Assembly: GCA_964247055.1 (NCBI GenBank)
Contig: OZ176057.1
Location: 124,001 to 188,000 of the forward strand
Origin: Paragordius varius
Taxonomy: Eukaryota; Animalia; Nematomorpha
Direction of reading: 5' to 3'
Length of the DNA: 64,000 nucleotides
The translations under genes and the position numbers were made by a program. The notes under the pieces were generated by a model. The model did no database searches. It saw only the letters and a program-made list of their open reading frames with translations, and was not told the origin of the DNA. This document shows positions 3,203 to 60,806 of the stretch, one piece after another (within the stretch, counting starts at the first letter, position 1; each line of letters opens with the position of its first letter).

Positions 3203-3747
3203 AATTCTAAAATAACCGTCATAATTTGTAAATTTTGTACAATTGTGAATAAACTTGTGATATATATATATATCTATTATATTTATTTGATTTGTAAGTT
3301 TTGTTTGAGCACTTAAGATTTAAAAATATTTTTAAGTTAATTGGTAAATTAACGTTATAGCTTTTTTGCTTTTATTTGTGTTCCTTAGAAATTCGAAATA
3401 TTATCATTTATTGGTAATGGATGGATTGATTGAGTTATCACATGTCTGATGAGACGGATATTTGTATAACATTGTATGACAAAATATATGGGCTCATTAA
3501 TAAACATAAAATGTGCATATTTTGTGTCTCTTTCAAAATGAGATGACAATGCGACAAAATTAAAAGTAATACTTAATAAATAAAAAACCATTTAGACCAC
3601 ATATGTAATGTAATTAAACCTATTAAATGAAGTATAATTGTTAAATAATATGAGTGTAATTTGTAAACTTTTCTCAAAATAATTAAACAAAAATTATCCA
3701 ATCATGGAGGTAATGTAGGCTTATTCATATAATGTTCTAAGGTCGAA

Positions 3748-4645
3748 AACTCCATCTATCCTAATACTGAAAAGGGTGGTTTCGGTGGCGGATGTATGTA
3801 AACTCAATATACGAATATCCACTAAGACAGTTGCATCAATCAGGTCCAAGTCGTACAAAAAATCGTCCGGCAAAATCTGTTCAAATTGGTTCTCAGCCAA
3901 ATCAACCACCATTCTTAACTCCATCTATCCTAATACTGAAAAGGGGTGGTTTCGGTGGCAAATGGATGTAAACTCAATATACGAATATCCATTAAGACAG
4001 TTGCATCAATCAGGTCCAAGTCTTACAAAAAACCGTCCGGCAAAATCTGTTCAAATTGGTTCTCAACCAAATCAACCAACCTTCTTAACTCCATCTAACC
4101 TAATACTGAAAAGGGGTGGTTTCTGAGACGGATGGATGTAAACTCTATATACGATAATCCATTAACACAGTTACATCCAAATCAGTTGTCAACATTCCTA
4201 ACTCCATCTATCCTAATACTGAAAAGGGGTGGTTTCGGTGGCGGATGGATGCAAACTTAATATACGAATATCCATTAAGACAGTTGCATCAATCAGATCC
4301 AAGTCTTACAAAAAACCGTCCGGCAAATTCTGTTCAAATTGGTCAACCAAATCAACCAACCTTCTTAACTCCATCTAACCTAATACTGAAAAGGGGTGGT
4401 TTCGGAGACGGATGGATATAAACTCTATATACGATAATCCATTAACACAGTTACATCCAAATCAGTTGTCCAACATTCCTAACTCCATCTATCCTAATAC
4501 TGAAAAGGGGTGGTTTCGGTGACGGATGGATGTAAACTTAATATACGATAATCCATTAACACAGTTACATCCAAATCAGTTGTCCAACATTCCTAACTCC
4601 ATCTATCCTAATACTGAAAAGCGGTGGTTTCGGTGACGGATGGAT
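3748..4645 (+). repeat. Small array of the 170-bp satellite, mixing ~168-170-bp and ~114-bp deletion-variant monomers
   Basis: The marker AACTCCATCTA recurs at ~3748, 3917, 4087, 4200, 4367, 4481 and 4595. Confidence 0.95.
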
Positions 4646-5711
4646 CCAAATCATAATAAGATTATCTATGTATACCAACATCAAAAACATCTAATGCTTT
4701 AAGACATTTTCCTTTTCATATAAATCCAATACAGCTCTCTCACTGTAAATACTTATTTACAAAAAAATTTTGTTATAACTATTATTTAATTAATGTTTTA
4801 TTATTTAAACCCCCAAAAATGGGGTCACTATATCATCAAAAAATAAATAATATAATCATATATAATATATTGAGATATGGTGTGGTTATTTTTACAATCT
4901 ATTTTTCGTGTCTTGTCAAAAATCAATTAGAGGAGATAGCGATTCCGTTACCCTTAATTTTTTAAAACACTAATATTTTATACAACCAACATCAAAGTTA
5001 TTGGCAAGATTTAATTTAAAAATTAAAACTAAAACCCTCTTGTGTTGATTACACCTCTACATATTTCTTAAAAATTAAAATATAGACAAAACGGAAAAAC
5101 TTAAATTTTTCAATATAAGAATATCCATATTTGTTACAACAGGGTTGTCCACTCTATTCAGTATTAACCAGCTCTAAAAAATTTTAATACATATAAAATT
5201 GAATTTCAATCAAAATTTAAGGTTTTTTAGATGATATATAATTAAGGTGACCAGATGTCCCGCTTTTTCACGATTATGTAAAAAAAATTTTTTTTTTAAT
5301 ACAACAAATAAATTTTTTTTATCCGTTTAAATTATTTATCATTAAATATCTTTAAAATCTATATAAATTTCAAATTAAAATTTTTTATTTTTAAATTAAA
5401 AATATTTATTTTTTTCGAATTTATATTATATGATTATTTACTTTCCTTCCTAATACTACTGTCATTATTATCAAAAAGCCAAATTAATACCACAAATCTC
5501 TAGATTAAAAGACAAACACAAATCGGTACCTTACACATTTATTCCAGAAAATTAAGGTAATATAATATTTATTATACTAATATTTTAGTTTTATTACTTG
5601 CCAACATTATTAAAAAGCCAAATTAATACCACAAATCGGTAGCTTAAAAGACAAATTGATACCACAAATTGGTACCTTACACGTTTATTTCACTAATAGT
5701 AGTTTTTAAAT

Positions 5712-7552
5712 ATGAGCACAAAAAGAGGTTGTAAATTCAACGATGAATTAATGAAAGATTTTCCTTATATTAAAAAACGAAGAATGAATCATCTGTTAAA
5801 TATCTTATATGCGAGGGGGAATTCCTAGTACATAGCGGCAAGCATGATATTACAAAGCATATGGAAACACAGAAACATAAAAAATGTTTAGATATGGTGG
5901 CAACATCTTACAAAATGAGCGATTTTTTTCGAAAAACCGCTTTTGGAGAGGAAGAAAAGAATTTGGCACTAGCTGAGGGCGTGTTATCTTTTCACGCCGT
6001 TAATCACAATCATTCCTTTAGATCTATGGACTGTACCTCATAGGTTATTCGCACGTTATTCCATAAAAAATTTACATGTGCCCGTACACAGGCTGAAGCC
6101 ATTGTGTGCAATGTCCTTTCGCCACATGCATTTTATGAAATACAAAAAGATTTGCTAAAAATTAATTTCTTATCCCTATACTCTGATGCATCAAATCACC
6201 ATCAAACAAAATTATTTCCCACTTTAATAAGATATTTTGATTCAGAAACCGGAATAAAAATTAAAATTTTAGATTTAATTTCTCTACCCGGTGAAAACTC
6301 CGAAATAATATATACCTCAATAATGAATATTCTAGAAAAAAATAATTTAAAAGACAAAATTATCGCCATATTGCGCTGACAACACCAATACGAACTTTGG
6401 TGGAAAAGCAAGGAGGGGAACAAAAAATATTTTTCATAAATTAACACATAATCTTAATCAAAACATTATTGTCTGTGCAGCGCATATAATACACAACGCT
6501 ATTCAAACAGCTACTGATTTGTTACCCCTAGATGTGGAAAATGTAGTTGTTAAAATATATTCCTATTTTTATATATACATGGTACGTGTTGAAACCCTTA
6601 AAGAATTCTGTGAAAAGGCAGAAGTTCAATATCAAAAAATGCTTGGATATTGCAAAGTTGGTTAGCTTTTATGCCAGCTATCGAATATGATCCTTTAAAA
6701 AAATTTTTTATCACAGGACAAATGTCCTACAACTTTAAAAGAGTTTTTTGAAAGGGATTCTTCAAAAATATGGTTAGAATTCTTACATAATCAAGCTTCT
6801 CTCTTTCAAAATAGTGTTAAAATATAGAGAAGGTGACAAAATTTCGGCAATCGAAGTAGCCAATGAAGTTAGTAACCTAAAATTCCAATGTCAAGAACGG
6901 TTAGAAAATATTTTTATACCATTAACCATCCGTAATATAATAAATAATTTAGAAAAACAAGGCTTAATAAATCCCCAAGATATCGTGTACCATATAAAAA
7001 TGTTATATACAAACAGTAAAGATTATTTGGAAGACTGGACGACGCAATTCAATGAAATTGATCATTTTCATTGGATTACATTAAAATCAGAATTTAATTG
7101 GTGCGATGTTCAAAAATCATTTGATTATATCTGCTCCCAAAAATTCTCAAAAAGTAATCTTTCAGAAAATGACTTTTTTCTGAAGTATCATTGGTTAAAA
7201 GATATATTAATAATGAAAATAAATTATGGACAAAAGAAAAATATACAGTAGAAAAAAATGGTTGGAAATATTTCATCATTTTGAAGCCAACTATATTACA
7301 TACAATAATATTTTAAAAATTGTGGAATTCGCACTATCTTTAGCTGGAACCAACGCTGCTACTGAGCGCGTTTTTTCCACAGTAAATCAGGTGTGGACAT
7401 CGGAAAAATAAATTTAAATGTTGAAACTTTAAACGCCGTTTTATCTGTCAAATATAATTTGACAAATTGTTGTGAAGACTTCTACAATATTTTAAAAATG
7501 ATGACAATCTGCTAAAACGCATTCACTCAAACAAAAAATATACCAAAGAATA
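5712..7552 (+). pseudogene. hAT transposase, fragmented by stops and frameshifts
   Basis: Fragments MSTKRGCKFND, HFRSMDC-like HSFRSMDC, SLYSDASNH, DNTNTNFGG, CAAHIIHN and the dimerisation-domain motif SLAGTNAATERVFS. Confidence 0.9.
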
Positions 7553-54899: not shown

Positions 54900-55007
54900 T
54901 AATCAGTTATTAGAGTGAATATTTAGAATATATTTTGGTGTATAGATGTTAAGACACGGATAATCTAATTTAAGACACGGATAATCTAATTTACTTTATA
55001 TAAAGTA

Positions 55008-55960
55008 AAGTAAATTAGGTGTAGAAAAAATAAAATAATAATTTTTTTATTCATATATTATAATCGCAAATTAAATTTATATTGTTTCGATATGTTTTTT
55101 CGAAGGGTTTTCTAAAAATACCGTTTTGAGAGATGCAATTTTTTGATTAGGGATATCACCTCAGTGCCACTTAATTTATTAGTGTCCTTTATATCTTGAT
55201 GATAAAATCCAAATCAGTATCATCCATCATATCAAATAAATCGATATGAATGGTTGGAGATGAAGGTACGGGAAGGTCAATGGAATGATAAACAGGACGA
55301 ATTGCACAGGAAAAGTTTGTATATTCGAAAGGTTTTTTGCTTTTTTGGTAAGGTTAATAAGAAATGGTTTTCTGAACAAAAGTAACATTCAGAATGAGAT
55401 TTTGGCTCTCGCCATATCAAAGGGATACCCCAAGGGAGTCCAGGTCCGGTTTTGTGTTACCATGCTCCTAAACTAATGCTACATGACCGAGATACGGTGT
55501 TCTGGGCCCAAATCTAGGTTCCCCATAATATAAAAAAATATTTTTTATGTAAGTGGTAATGTTTATACTATAAGTTTTTTTGTGTATTGTCCACATATAT
55601 GGCAAACAATATTTTTATCAATCCTAATATTATAAATATATATACTTGGTTATTAATTATATTTTTTGTACATTTTGGGTATATAATAATATTTCTTGAT
55701 GAAAAAACTGATATGTAGTATATTTAAGTGTGGGAAATATTTAAAAATATCATATGAAATAAAGAATATATTATATGCACTGAGTAAAATTAGCTTTTTT
55801 TACATAAAAAAACAGCAAAAAAGATGTAAAAATTAAATTTATTTTTAAAATAAAAGTTCACAAAGCTATTACAAAGTGATATTTATACTTAAACAAACAT
55901 CATTAACATCCAAGAACATATAATAAAGTTTGTTTTGATTTAATAAATTAATAAAAAATA
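55008..55960 (+). repeat. 953-bp direct repeat, copy 1 (copy 2 at 58782-59734)
   Basis: Same length, offset 3774 bp, no difference seen on manual comparison; the copies directly abut the retroelement on both sides. Confidence 0.95.
55183..55620 (-). pseudogene. Chapaev3-like transposase N-terminal relic (duplicated at 58957-59394); candidate element terminus ...TGTGTCACAGTG|TAA at 60064
   Basis: Minus-strand fragments IVCHICGQY, WAQNTVSRSC..LGAW, LPWGIPLIWREPKSHSECYFC and CAIRPVYHSIDLPVPSSP match recalled Chapaev3 motifs (FCYICGEY, WAPH.C..C, PMVWREP.NH..DCYFC, SAIRPVPH...LPVP). Confidence 0.78.
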
Positions 55961-58675
55961 CCCCCATCACTGGACCAGCCGATCCCCAACAACAGGAGCT
56001 TACTAAAACTTGACTCCAACGCACTAATACAAAAAATCTGCGAAATTCATAACACCCCAGATGAATGGAATAATTTTGAAACAATCTTAGCCGAAATAAC
56101 GATACCATGTCCAGACCCTTCATCACATCCCCGCGGAGATATTCCCCGCAAACCTAACTACATACAGAACGTCTATAAGTTTAACCGCAAGAAAGCCATC
56201 CGACTAATCGTAGAAGGACCCCCCAAATACTGCAATATCGACAGTGAAACGATTGAAAATTATTACATAAACAAAATTGGTAACACCCCGCCACTGGTTT
56301 TAGAACCAGTCACATTTGAGGGAGAAGAATTATTCGAGCTAGAGCCATTTTCTCATTGTGAAATAAAAAAGAAATTATACAAGATGAATAACTCGTCCCC
56401 TGGTAATGATGGTATCACTTACAACACGTGGAAAAGATTAGACCCACACTGCCTCCTCCTGGAGAAAATTTTCAACACGTGCATCAAATTTGGCAAGATC
56501 CCCTCGCATTGGAAAACCACAAAATCTATTCTAATCCCAAAGAAAAATTCTGACCTTTCTATTATCAAAAACTGGCGTCCAATAGCCTTGTGCAACACAA
56601 TATATAAAATATTTACGGCATTATTATCGGATAGAATCAATAATTACGCAAAACTTAACAACATATTTGACCCAGCACAGAAAGGTTTTATGCCATACGA
56701 CGGATGCCTAGAACATAACTTCACAATCAGTTCCCGCATAAGGCATAGTAAAACACATAAAACACCTCTATTTATAACATGGCTGGACATCTCGGCCGCC
56801 TTTGATTCTGTTCCTCACAAATGTATTTCCGACTGCCTCCAGAAAATTGGCCTTAGTAGTAGTTTTACCAACCTTATCAGCGATATCTATAAAAACGCTG
56901 CTACCTCTTTCATGACTGGCAATGGTCACACCAAGCTAATAAATTTCAACTCTGGCATCAAACAAGGGTGCCCACTATCCGGCACCCTGTTCAACCTCGT
57001 CATCAATGACACCCTGAAGTTCCTTAGATTAGACGGCCACGATGCGTTAGCATACGCTGACGACATATGCCTGATATCGATAGAACACCACAATCACCAA
57101 CGCGCCATAAATTCAGTACAACAGTCACTGAGCAAGATTGGACTTCTTCTTAACCCACAAAAGTGTAATTCGCTCATCAGCCACAGCGATCAGACCCCAT
57201 TCATAATAGACAGCTTGCCAATCAACATAATAAATGAAGCCGACACAATCAATTTCCTTGGCAACCCAGTCGGCCTCCACTTTTACAAACAAATCCCTAA
57301 CTGCGATTTAGTCGATAAAATCCAACAATCCAGTCTGAATCCCGCTCAAAAACTTGACGCAATAAAAACATTTTTCTACCCTACCCTTACACACATGCTC
57401 AGGCATAACCAGCTTAATTATAATATTAGCAACACAATCGATTACAAAATATGTAAAGCAGTAAAACAAATCCTCGCAATCCCAAAAAGTGCGGCCAATA
57501 GTTACCTATTTGGTTCTCGCAGCAAAGGAGCATTAGGGCTTCCATTAACAAAAGATGACATGAACATCTTCCGGATTGACTCGGCCTTCAAATTACTAAC
57601 CAGCAACGACGAAGTGGTCCGGAACACCGCTGTTCATGAACTAAGTAAAACCGCAGGTAAGAGATTCAAACTCAACTCTCCGTCACATAGCGAGCTTGCT
57701 TCATTTCTATCAGGGGACAACCCACCCGACTCCATCAACAGAAACAATGGGTTCGACAATGTATGGACCAAAGCCCGAATGGCTTCCAGAAGCCTCAAGG
57801 TCAGTTGGTCACTCGACCCAACGCCCTCAGTAGCGTTTAACAACATTACAATCGATATAAAGAATCGACACAATGTAGTATCGCTCCTGCGCAAGTGGAA
57901 AAGAGATCATATCGACCGTGATCTTGAACACACGGCCTCGCAAGGAAAGGTAATGCAGTGTGTCGCACAACACAAAGCATCACATTTCTTCCTATACAAC
58001 TTCCGAAACCTAAGATACAGGGACTGGAAGTTCATACACAAAGCAAGGCTTAACCTCCTACCCACAAAAAGCCAAAGGTTTGCCAATTCATATGATCGAA
58101 ACTGCCGGAGATGCAACGAGCCCAACGAATCCACAGGCCATATTCTTGGGTTCTGTGCCAACAGCAGCCGCTTAATTAACTTGCGGCACGATAATATAGT
58201 ACGTCACATCAAAGAAAACCTCCCATCCAATGCACGACTCATAGCCGAAAATCAAGCACTGGACTCGTCAAGACTTCGACCCGACCTCGTAGTGGCAGTT
58301 GGCAACAAGTGCATCATCATCGATCCAACTGTTACCTACGAGAACGGGCCTAACGCCCTAGACGAAGCACACAATATTAAGATAGAGAAGTATCGTCACC
58401 TCACAGTCTCACTTTCCGGCCAATTTGACGAGGTGTACATCATCCCAATCGTCGTGGGCGCACTTGGGTCATGGCATTACAAAAATGAACGACTATTTGA
58501 AAATATAAACATGAAAAATAAGTCCGAGATGAGAAAGGATATAGTTATCGACACTATTAAATTCTCCTCTGACATATTCTTTGAATTCACTAGTGGGAGA
58601 AACTATATCCCCTCTCTCTCGGAGACACCTACCTCCAACTTCATCCGGTCCAACAGCGAACCCGAAACACAATAA
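55961..58675 (+). CDS. RT + CCHC zinc knuckle + restriction-like endonuclease; frame open from 55961 (first Met at 56384)
   Basis: Motifs SSPGNDGI, WRPIAL, QKGF..DGC.EH, WLDISAAFDSV, GIKQGCPLS, YADD, KLDAIKTFFYP, IDSAFKLLTS, CRRC..NESTGHILGFC, RHD, RPDLV..IIDPTV..K..KY and VGALGSW. Confidence 0.93.
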   Translation, partial: PPSLDQPIPNNRSLLKLDSNALIQKICEIHNTPDEWNNFETILAEITIPCPDPSSHPRGDIPRKPNYIQNVYKFNRKKAIRLIVEGPPKYCNIDSETIENYYINKIGNTPPLVLEPVTFEGEELFELEPFSHCEIKKKLYKMNNSSPGNDGITYNTWKRLDPHCLLLEKIFNTCIKFGKIPSHWKTTKSILIPKKNSDLSIIKNWRPIALCNTIYKIFTALLSDRINNYAKLNNIFDPAQKGFMPYDGCLEHNFTISSRIRHSKTHKTPLFITWLDISAAFDSVPHKCISDCLQKIGLSSSFTNLISDIYKNAATSFMTGNGHTKLINFNSGIKQGCPLSGTLFNLVINDTLKFLRLDGHDALAYADDICLISIEHHNHQRAINSVQQSLSKIGLLLNPQKCNSLISHSDQTPFIIDSLPINIINEADTINFLGNPVGLHFYKQIPNCDLVDKIQQSSLNPAQKLDAIKTFFYPTLTHMLRHNQLNYNISNTIDYKICKAVKQILAIPKSAANSYLFGSRSKGALGLPLTKDDMNIFRIDSAFKLLTSNDEVVRNTAVHELSKTAGKRFKLNSPSHSELASFLSGDNPPDSINRNNGFDNVWTKARMASRSLKVSWSLDPTPSVAFNNITIDIKNRHNVVSLLRKWKRDHIDRDLEHTASQGKVMQCVAQHKASHFFLYNFRNLRYRDWKFIHKARLNLLPTKSQRFANSYDRNCRRCNEPNESTGHILGFCANSSRLINLRHDNIVRHIKENLPSNARLIAENQALDSSRLRPDLVVAVGNKCIIIDPTVTYENGPNALDEAHNIKIEKYRHLTVSLSGQFDEVYIIPIVVGALGSWHYKNERLFENINMKNKSEMRKDIVIDTIKFSSDIFFEFTSGRNYIPSLSETPTSNFIRSNSEPETQ

Positions 58676-58781
58676 TTGTCAATATTCCTATTTCTATATT
58701 TAATTCTAATGTGATCCTATATTTATATTTTTTTCAGCATTGTTTTTCTATATCCATTACATATATTTTTTTTACTAAAAT
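55961..58781 (+). mobile_element. 5'-truncated RLE-type non-LTR retrotransposon (R2 group, NeSL/Utopia-like)
   Basis: C-rich segment with one long ORF and a ~100-bp AT-rich 3' UTR; the frame is open right up to the 5' junction. Confidence 0.9.
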
Positions 58782-59734
58782 AAGTAAATTAGGTGTAGAA
58801 AAAATAAAATAATAATTTTTTTATTCATATATTATAATCGCAAATTAAATTTATATTGTTTCGATATGTTTTTTCGAAGGGTTTTCTAAAAATACCGTTT
58901 TGAGAGATGCAATTTTTTGATTAGGGATATCACCTCAGTGCCACTTAATTTATTAGTGTCCTTTATATCTTGATGATAAAATCCAAATCAGTATCATCCA
59001 TCATATCAAATAAATCGATATGAATGGTTGGAGATGAAGGTACGGGAAGGTCAATGGAATGATAAACAGGACGAATTGCACAGGAAAAGTTTGTATATTC
59101 GAAAGGTTTTTTGCTTTTTTGGTAAGGTTAATAAGAAATGGTTTTCTGAACAAAAGTAACATTCAGAATGAGATTTTGGCTCTCGCCATATCAAAGGGAT
59201 ACCCCAAGGGAGTCCAGGTCCGGTTTTGTGTTACCATGCTCCTAAACTAATGCTACATGACCGAGATACGGTGTTCTGGGCCCAAATCTAGGTTCCCCAT
59301 AATATAAAAAAATATTTTTTATGTAAGTGGTAATGTTTATACTATAAGTTTTTTTGTGTATTGTCCACATATATGGCAAACAATATTTTTATCAATCCTA
59401 ATATTATAAATATATATACTTGGTTATTAATTATATTTTTTGTACATTTTGGGTATATAATAATATTTCTTGATGAAAAAACTGATATGTAGTATATTTA
59501 AGTGTGGGAAATATTTAAAAATATCATATGAAATAAAGAATATATTATATGCACTGAGTAAAATTAGCTTTTTTTACATAAAAAAACAGCAAAAAAGATG
59601 TAAAAATTAAATTTATTTTTAAAATAAAAGTTCACAAAGCTATTACAAAGTGATATTTATACTTAAACAAACATCATTAACATCCAAGAACATATAATAA
59701 AGTTTGTTTTGATTTAATAAATTAATAAAAAATA
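58782..59734 (+). repeat. 953-bp direct repeat, copy 2
   Basis: Starts AAGTAAATTAGGTGTAG and ends AATTAATAAAAAATA, as does copy 1. Confidence 0.95.
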
Positions 59735-60806
59735 GTGTGAAAAAATGTTAAGTTACCCAATTTTTGAGGGTTTTTGCCCCCTAAAACTAAATGTATTAGA
59801 TATTTTGAGTAAATTTTTTTTTATTTTAAAGATAAATTGGTAATTTCTTGTAAAAATACTTATGTAAGCCACATATTATTTGTTTACATAGCGAAAAATA
59901 TTTACAAACAAGAAAATTTTGGATATGTCCAAATATGGAAAAAGTCCCATATCTCGAAAACGAGCTGGGTAAGTAAAAAAAATTTTACGCAAATCTGATC
60001 ACAATACTATAAGGAATCAGAAAATATTTAGAAAATCTAGTCCAGAAAAAGCTGTGTCACAGTGTAATTACTATAGGCTAAATAAAGAGTATTAAATACA
60101 GATATTATTAAAATATATTAAAATGATTAAATTGTTAATTAAAAAATTTGTCTGGATAATTACATATTTTACTGTAATTTCATAATTAAAACAAATTATA
60201 TTATTGATTTGAGATAACCCCGTCCTAAGAACCAATTTTTTTTAAAAACGACCTTAAATTTGTTAAGTGGATGTTGCCCACAAAAGGGTTATCGTGCAGT
60301 TAAAGTTATCGGTGAGTTTTATTATTACCTTTGTTTTCTTATTTATATGATGAGGAATACAACCGTCATGATAATAGAAATTCGGATGAAGACAGGAAAT
60401 CTGAATCAGATCTAACTATAAACGATGAAAATGTTGCCGAATTCGATGATGTTCGTGAAAGAGATATACGAAATAAAAAAGATATTTAAAAATATATGCA
60501 AACCTATGTTCTGTCATACCATTAATAAATATTTTAATTTACTTGATTGTAAATAATATTTAATAAAAATTTTGCTTCGAACTTGGATTCTTATGTTAAA
60601 TTTTTCAGTATATAAAACTATTAAATCATTCCTGCTCTTCATATTGCCACTCATACCATTCACAAAATTAGTGATAAAGAAAAAAATTCTGATAAAATAT
60701 AGATTATCACAGATTTTTTATTAAGAATGATTTGTGAAACAATATTTATAAAAAGCGTATTAAATAACAACATCTGCATAAATGACAATTATGATTTAAT
60801 ACACAG

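Follow-up and report, generated by a model that had tools for sequence, protein, structure and literature searches.

A probable 953-bp target-site duplication around an off-target, U1-specific retrotransposon in Paragordius varius

How did a retrotransposon without long terminal repeats (a non-LTR retrotransposon) of the nematomorph Paragordius varius come to lie between two identical 953-bp copies of a sequence that has nothing to do with it? The locus in question is part of a 64,000-nucleotide stretch of DNA (contig 8, OZ176057.1, positions 124001-188000; hereafter the window), and genome comparisons were made across the whole assembly of 110.6 Mb in 44 contigs (GCA_964247055.1). Features are numbered from the first base of the window, unless another contig or a locus is named, and all of those described in the window lie on its plus strand. 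An initial annotation of this DNA had noticed direct repeats of equal length abutting a retroelement, and a base-by-base comparison (offset 3,774 bp) bears this out: the first copy (55008-55960) and the second copy (58782-59734) agree at 953 of 953 bases, and a repeat finder seeded the same identical pair. Identity falls to background at once outside the repeats, with mismatches from 55007/58781 on one side and from 55961/59735 on the other. The annotation had also allowed for an independent, older duplication, which is not indicated given zero divergence in the alignment. Both copies directly adjoin a 2,821-bp element (55961-58781), with zero filler at the inner junctions, and a composition profile shows a block of 39%–47% G+C (56000-58500) within surrounding DNA of 21%–32%. 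A plain tandem duplication was rejected, as repeat-element-repeat differs from a doubled segment. We consider the locus to be, probably, the product of a real and recent event of off-target target-primed reverse transcription (TPRT) that duplicated 953 bp of the target, i.e., a giant target-site duplication (TSD).

Before this reading can be developed, the assembly itself has to be considered as the source of the structure. Copy number could have been mis-resolved, with an empty site and a circular or tandem (repeat plus element) molecule, or some other arrangement, threaded through the repeat. Complete identity of the two copies is also expected from a false duplication, and the structure rests on a single assembly. 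Against this, each inner junction is found just once in the assembly and has to derive from reads, while the inner and both outer junctions fit one linear molecule. The unit is, moreover, just 3.8 kb long and easily crossed by long reads, there are no N or gap bases in the window, and no empty-allele contig (with a single 953-bp copy) is present in the assembly. An artefact is hence unlikely in our judgment.

The nature of the element is apparent from its predicted protein. A frame of 907 codons stays open between 55955 and its stop at 58675, within which the first ATG initiates an open reading frame (ORF) at 56384-58675; the 3′ untranslated region (58676-58781) ends within an A/T-rich, (AAAT)n-like tail. 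The ORF contains an RVT_1 domain (Pfam, 1.3e-38), a YADD reverse transcriptase (RT) active site is visible in the translation, and the C-terminal 230 residues match the R2 protein structures 9nl3 and 9dou at 1e-18. In a residue-by-residue alignment to these structures, the columns of the CCHC knuckle and of the PD..D..E..K nuclease are conserved. By its combination of RT and C-terminal R2-like knuckle and nuclease motifs, the element therefore belongs to the non-LTR retrotransposons that carry a restriction-like endonuclease (RLE). Positions 1040 and 1052 of PDB chain 9nl3_A align with E and R in the element; if residues E1040 and K1052 of PMC13486585 follow the numbering of that chain, the sequence would carry no sign of an inborn nicking defect. 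A full-length copy elsewhere in the genome (locus L063) has a single ORF of 1,280 codons (3286-7128), with an N-terminal C2H2 finger at residues 248-270 (Pfam) and two more Cys/His motifs recognizable by eye upstream of that finger. No Pfam match to a Myb domain was found in the full-length ORF at E up to 0.1 (no structural test was made). The window copy begins at codon 377 of this ORF, with approximately 1,265 bp gone at the 5′ end, and therefore all of the N-terminal zinc fingers are absent from it. Both the 907-codon frame and the start at codon 377 agree with the original description of a 5′-truncated element with an intact ORF.

Only two near-identical copies of the 2,821 bp were found elsewhere in the assembly. 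The copy on contig 6 (3726413-3729233), which is part of the full-length element, differs from the window copy by 4 substitutions in 2,821 bp (99.9% identity), and the copy on contig 4 (7793805-7796391), 5′-truncated at element position 241, differs from it by 3 substitutions and a 6-bp insertion. Changes private to one copy over this length amount to 2 substitutions in the window, 2 in the contig 6 copy, and 1 plus the 6-bp insertion in the contig 4 copy. The full-length element splits a variant gene for U1 small nuclear RNA (snRNA; L063 3122-7389; contig 6, 3725121-3729388). To its left is the U1 5′ end (ATACTTACCTGGC..., L063 3122 onward), and to its right is the remaining U1 from about position 20 (Rfam U1, 74 bits). 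In addition, 10 nt of U1 downstream flank follow the tail of the contig 4 copy, and hence the template RNA reads through into the target, as has been reported for R1 (PMC2718515). The element thus represents a U1-snRNA-gene-specific family (U1 insertion confirmed on one copy) that is here off target, and no U1-like sequence was seen at the insertion site in the window. The canonical U1 insertion on contig 6 has no duplication of the 953-bp kind. The flanks of other genomic copies had been singled out as informative by the initial annotation: we screened 33 element-related loci (L031-L063) and found no direct repeats of at least 80 bp flanking the element besides the window's own, so that among the loci screened the giant duplication is singular.

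Further observations concern the family and its target gene. A second U1-like gene, located 4 kb from the contig 6 element (L036 29-195), is truncated at this same point of U1. The contig also carries an intact U1 snRNA gene (L061 2141-2305; contig 6, 3718553-3718717, minus strand; Rfam 114 bits) that has the 5′ end ACTTACTTGG, not ACTTACCTGG. The contig 4 copy (L033; contig 4, 7792305-7797891) lies within the ~150-bp centre of a 1,311-bp inverted repeat, the arms of which are 96.8% identical, and no flanking direct repeat was found at this locus. On contig 7 (8515524-8735512; L034, L040-L049), 3′ fragments of a related element (positions 2170-2821, ~83% identity) recur about every 20–25 kb over 220 kb. 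This spacing suggests a large tandemly repeated segment, and no U1 was detected by Rfam in the five of these loci that it covered.

The next question is which part of the structure was there before the element arrived. The 953-bp segment has at least 20 paralogs at 90%–95% identity (the best at 95%). We built an empty-site join from the left flank, one copy of the repeat and the right flank, and aligned it to these paralogs. The join aligns as a single block to L003-L020, from 108 bp to the left of the repeat (54900) to 315 bp to its right (60049), and at least 12 paralogs continue uninterrupted and in single copy through both repeat edges in a multiple alignment. The flanks of the structure are thus the left (54900-55007) and right (59735-60049) remainders of a host interspersed repeat, the former contiguous with the 953-bp segment in all paralogs. 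As the paralogs are single-copy across both edges, the ancestral state would have been flank, one repeat copy, flank, and as even the nearest paralog is only 95% identical, the duplication would be local and young. From these alignments, the second copy is predicted to have arisen locally, with or after the insertion.

The host repeat family measures at least 2.8 kb and has long terminal inverted repeats (roughly 380–550 bp), with only the right 1,376 bp held in the window; internally deleted subfamilies also exist at ~88% identity. The copy in the window carries ~27 private substitutions and ~13 private indels, and the duplicated DNA is therefore far older than the duplication. That the duplication is much younger than its content, as originally proposed, is accordingly well supported by 953/953 identity set against the private changes of the relic. 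The same proposal described this content as an old Chapaev3 relic. Its age is upheld by the private changes and by membership in an interspersed family at 90%–95% identity, but the Chapaev3 label gained no support: Pfam matched none of 12 ORF pieces taken from the window and from two paralogs, and a protein atlas search with the longest paralog ORF of the host repeat gave no match.

These comparisons bear on two other explanations. If the 953 bp were a part of the element, whether as an LTR-like repeat, as a pseudo-LTR from tandem insertion or as a 3′ transduction, the direct-repeat layout would follow, and it is the layout alone that speaks for this. The sequence is not near the contig 6 copy, the contig 4 copy or any other element match, and the flanks of those two copies differ. 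Both LTR and pseudo-LTR were rejected, since the 953 bp lie inside an unrelated repeat family that goes on for 108 bp leftward and 315 bp rightward, and are missing from other element copies. Transduction was rejected as well, as neither of the two copies has the sequence at either end. The LTR-like alternative of the initial annotation thus falls away, along with the transduction that it had named as a possible objection, and we give such readings almost no credence. As a second possibility, a circle made up of the element and a single copy of the repeat could have integrated homologously, or two independent insertions at the segment edges could have undergone unequal crossing-over. Either route yields the order flank, repeat, element, repeat, flank, and circle integration had been put forward from the start. 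It is, however, less parsimonious: the repeat on the circle must be 100% identical to this locus, whereas the best paralog reaches 95%, so that the circle would have to derive from the finished structure itself. Crossing-over would require that a 110-Mb genome with only three young copies had been hit twice within 1 kb. We regard both routes as highly improbable.

With the repeat identified as probable target DNA, the inner junctions can be examined for the manner of insertion. At the 5′ junction (55960/55961), repeat and element are joined bluntly, and neither filler nor microhomology is present. At the 3′ end, the contig 6 and contig 4 copies read ...ACTAAAAT AAATAAATA and then U1, and the window copy (58781/58782) reads ...ACTAAAAT AA and then target (GTAAATTAGG...). 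The former two extend 9 nt further in the tail, and the window copy ends 7–9 nt short of the element end. At the switch point, tail and target match perfectly over 2 nt and imperfectly over 8 nt (7/8), and these first nucleotides of the second repeat copy are equally derivable from the element tail. The 3′ junction looks like what would be expected if a target 3′ end had annealed just within the A/T-rich tail of the template.

The outer junctions, compared across 12 to >20 paralogs, are more complicated. Exactly over the left edge of the first copy (55003-55012), the window has 5 private extra nucleotides (AAGTA/TAAAG, phase ambiguous), with one unit present in paralogs and two in the window; this is the putative site of the bottom-strand (first-strand) break and of priming. 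Exactly at the right edge of the second copy (59734/59735), a TTT present in 12/12 aligned paralogs is missing, and the first copy likewise ends just before the TTT position. A third private change, a deletion-insertion at 54970-54996 (compared with >20 paralogs), sits 12–35 nt to the left of the left edge, where 24 nt, made up of a renewed copy of the preceding 21 nt plus 3 others, stand in place of 5 nt of the paralogs. Private indels elsewhere in the relic occur at ~0.7% per base, and two falling on both junctions by chance would have a probability of roughly 5e-4, as a post-hoc estimate. The pattern would be better explained by breakage of both strands at both sites than by two nicks that were filled in. 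Alternatively, the outer-junction indels are older than the event, and the doubled TAAAG then created the match to the element tail. The initial annotation was incomplete in these respects, having missed the small private indels at both outer junctions as well as the U1-specific, off-target character of the family.

We therefore propose the following sequence of events for the giant TSD. As the sequences show, RNA of a U1-specific RLE element near-identical to the full-length copy on contig 6 was reverse-transcribed at an ectopic, A/T-rich site in the old repeat. The primer for complementary DNA (cDNA) synthesis would have been a 3′ end of the bottom strand at the left edge, annealed a few nucleotides within the (AAAT)n-like tail, as the junction suggests, and reverse transcription ended after 2,821 nt, leaving the 5′ truncation. 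Instead of being joined to a top-strand cut beside the first nick, as at the normal target, the cDNA would then have formed a blunt joint with a top-strand end lying 953 bp downstream, after which repair synthesis would have copied the intervening target twice. A bottom-strand primer at the left edge together with a top-strand 3′ end 953 bp downstream amounts to the geometry of a TSD, and the duplication is oriented as it should be if the top-strand end lay downstream of the site of priming. At the ectopic site, which lacks similarity to U1, the element proteins may have been unable to place the second nick. By analogy with experiments on R2 (PMC13486585), this second-strand nick is likely to have failed off target and a distant break, host-made or a second one made by the element, to have been used instead. 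The private outer indels, finally, point to breakage and end-joining of both strands at each of the two sites. The initial annotation had suggested a giant TSD formed through second-strand cleavage or repair ~950 bp away, and this is still the best-supported reading in view of the repeat as target DNA and the apparently primed 3′ junction; its simple two-nick form, on the other hand, is at odds with the +5 and −3 bp.

A more specific version, to which we attach only tentative weight, is that the locus may be a natural, inherited record of R2-type completion without the element's own second nick. Both sites would have been cut on both strands, with a 5-nt stagger filled in where priming took place and 3 nt lost 953 bp away, and the two strands of the freed 953-bp segment would each have been re-copied with the cDNA between them, possibly with template jumping by the RT onto target DNA, and then end-joined.

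Some of the same observations would suit an endonuclease-independent capture, in which a lesion (a stalled fork or double-strand break) was already making a 953-bp tandem duplication and the cDNA was caught at its junction. Endonuclease-independent L1 insertions often show microhomology and a lost 3′ end, and the window insertion has microhomology at its 3′ junction and lacks its last 7–9 nt. The absence of similarity to the U1 target and the private indels and templated-looking 24-nt insertion at or near the outer junctions would fit as well, and the contig 4 copy, in the middle of a 1.3-kb inverted repeat, is unusually placed too. Yet capture shares its topology with TPRT involving a giant TSD, and sequence cannot separate the two. 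It still requires an RT and element RNA at the lesion, while kilobase duplications are documented for R2-initiated insertion without a second nick. We consider capture rather unlikely.

The age of the event is consistent with the proposal. From 2 private substitutions per 2,821 bp, ~1.3 differences would be expected between the repeat copies, and zero were observed, which is compatible with the age of the element copy. Several points nonetheless weigh against off-target TPRT with a giant TSD. Gene conversion could be another way of keeping both copies identical. The ancestral state is reconstructed from paralogs diverged by ~5% rather than from an orthologous empty allele, and the structure rests on one assembly. 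The two-nick and fill-in model predicts unchanged outer junctions, yet a gain of 5 bp and a loss of 3 bp are seen there. Moreover, the site is unlike the U1 target, so that the element endonuclease is only the presumed maker of either break. Lastly, this is a single case from which no rate or rule can be derived.

Comparison with known systems clarifies what is and is not unusual here. Target duplications of ~1 kb were described when second-strand nicking by R2 fails (Aderounmu et al., PNAS 2026, PMC13486585), and the authors speculate that downstream single-strand breaks derived from the host are then used. It was not until August 2026 that kilobase duplications following R2-type insertion were reported, and then solely with engineered proteins in cultured human cells (PMC13486585). 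The locus resembles that system in its R2-type RT/RLE protein, in apparent priming at the first-strand nick with the 5′ end joined to the second strand ~1 kb downstream, in a duplication of roughly 1,000 bp, and in a blunt 5′ joint of the 'Join' type. It differs in that the experiments used engineered avian R2 variants, transgene templates and human ribosomal DNA (rDNA) in cultured cells, whereas the window holds a natural U1-lineage element with wild-type-looking motifs at a non-canonical site in an assembly, where germline inheritance and failure of the second nick are both presumed. Larger duplications are also known from L1, including tandem duplications of 1–10 kb 'regarded as large TSDs' (bioRxiv 10.1101/2024.12.14.628481) and megabase L1-bridged duplications in tumours (PMC7058536). 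These share with the present locus a tandem target duplication with a 5′-truncated retroelement at the joint, but their setting is human cells, somatic or experimental, their enzyme is of the apurinic/apyrimidinic endonuclease (APE) type, their priming is by poly(A), and the models proposed for them invoke break-induced replication or sister-chromatid bridging.

A TSD of 126 bp, found in R9 of bdelloid rotifers (Gladyshev and Arkhipova 2009, as cited in PMC5035012 and PMC13486585), had been taken by the initial annotation as the known extreme, a premise outdated by the ~1-kb R2 (PMC13486585) and 1–10 kb L1 duplications. R9, as portrayed in those citing papers, is likewise an RLE element related to R2 and has a TSD of unusual length; its 126 bp are by that account regular and site-specific in every 28S copy, whereas the 953 bp of the window are a one-off at an ectopic site. 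In domain layout (a single ORF, N-terminal zinc fingers, RT, C-terminal knuckle and RLE), the element is like Utopia/NeSL-clade and R2-clade elements (PMC4640811, PMC5035012). It further shares with them a single insertion spot within a multicopy small RNA gene and a template that continues into the target downstream. The target is U1, however, not U2 or 28S. By target site, the element does not fit the R2 clade in the strict sense, which has a 28S rDNA site, as the full-length copy splits a U1 gene, nor does it fit Utopia (NeSL clade), which has a U2 site, as the target is U1. The event appears to be a natural counterpart of the experimental outcome of 2026 rather than a new kind of mechanism, with footprints at the outer junctions that two simple nicks would not produce.

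The locus suggests that the same outcome, on the scale of about a kilobase, occurs in nature, in an inherited genome and with an apparently wild-type element away from U1. It also gives detail beyond bulk junction profiling, namely a 3′ end that appears to be microhomology-primed, a blunt 5′ joint and small outer indels. Such an event creates perfect direct repeats, between which recombination could later delete the insert, leaving a single copy, or which could seed a segmental duplication. These features are relevant to how retrotransposons reshape genomes and to assessing by-products of R2-based gene insertion. If the reading is true and general, off-target retrotransposition by RLE elements would give rise to kilobase tandem duplications in the germlines of animals.

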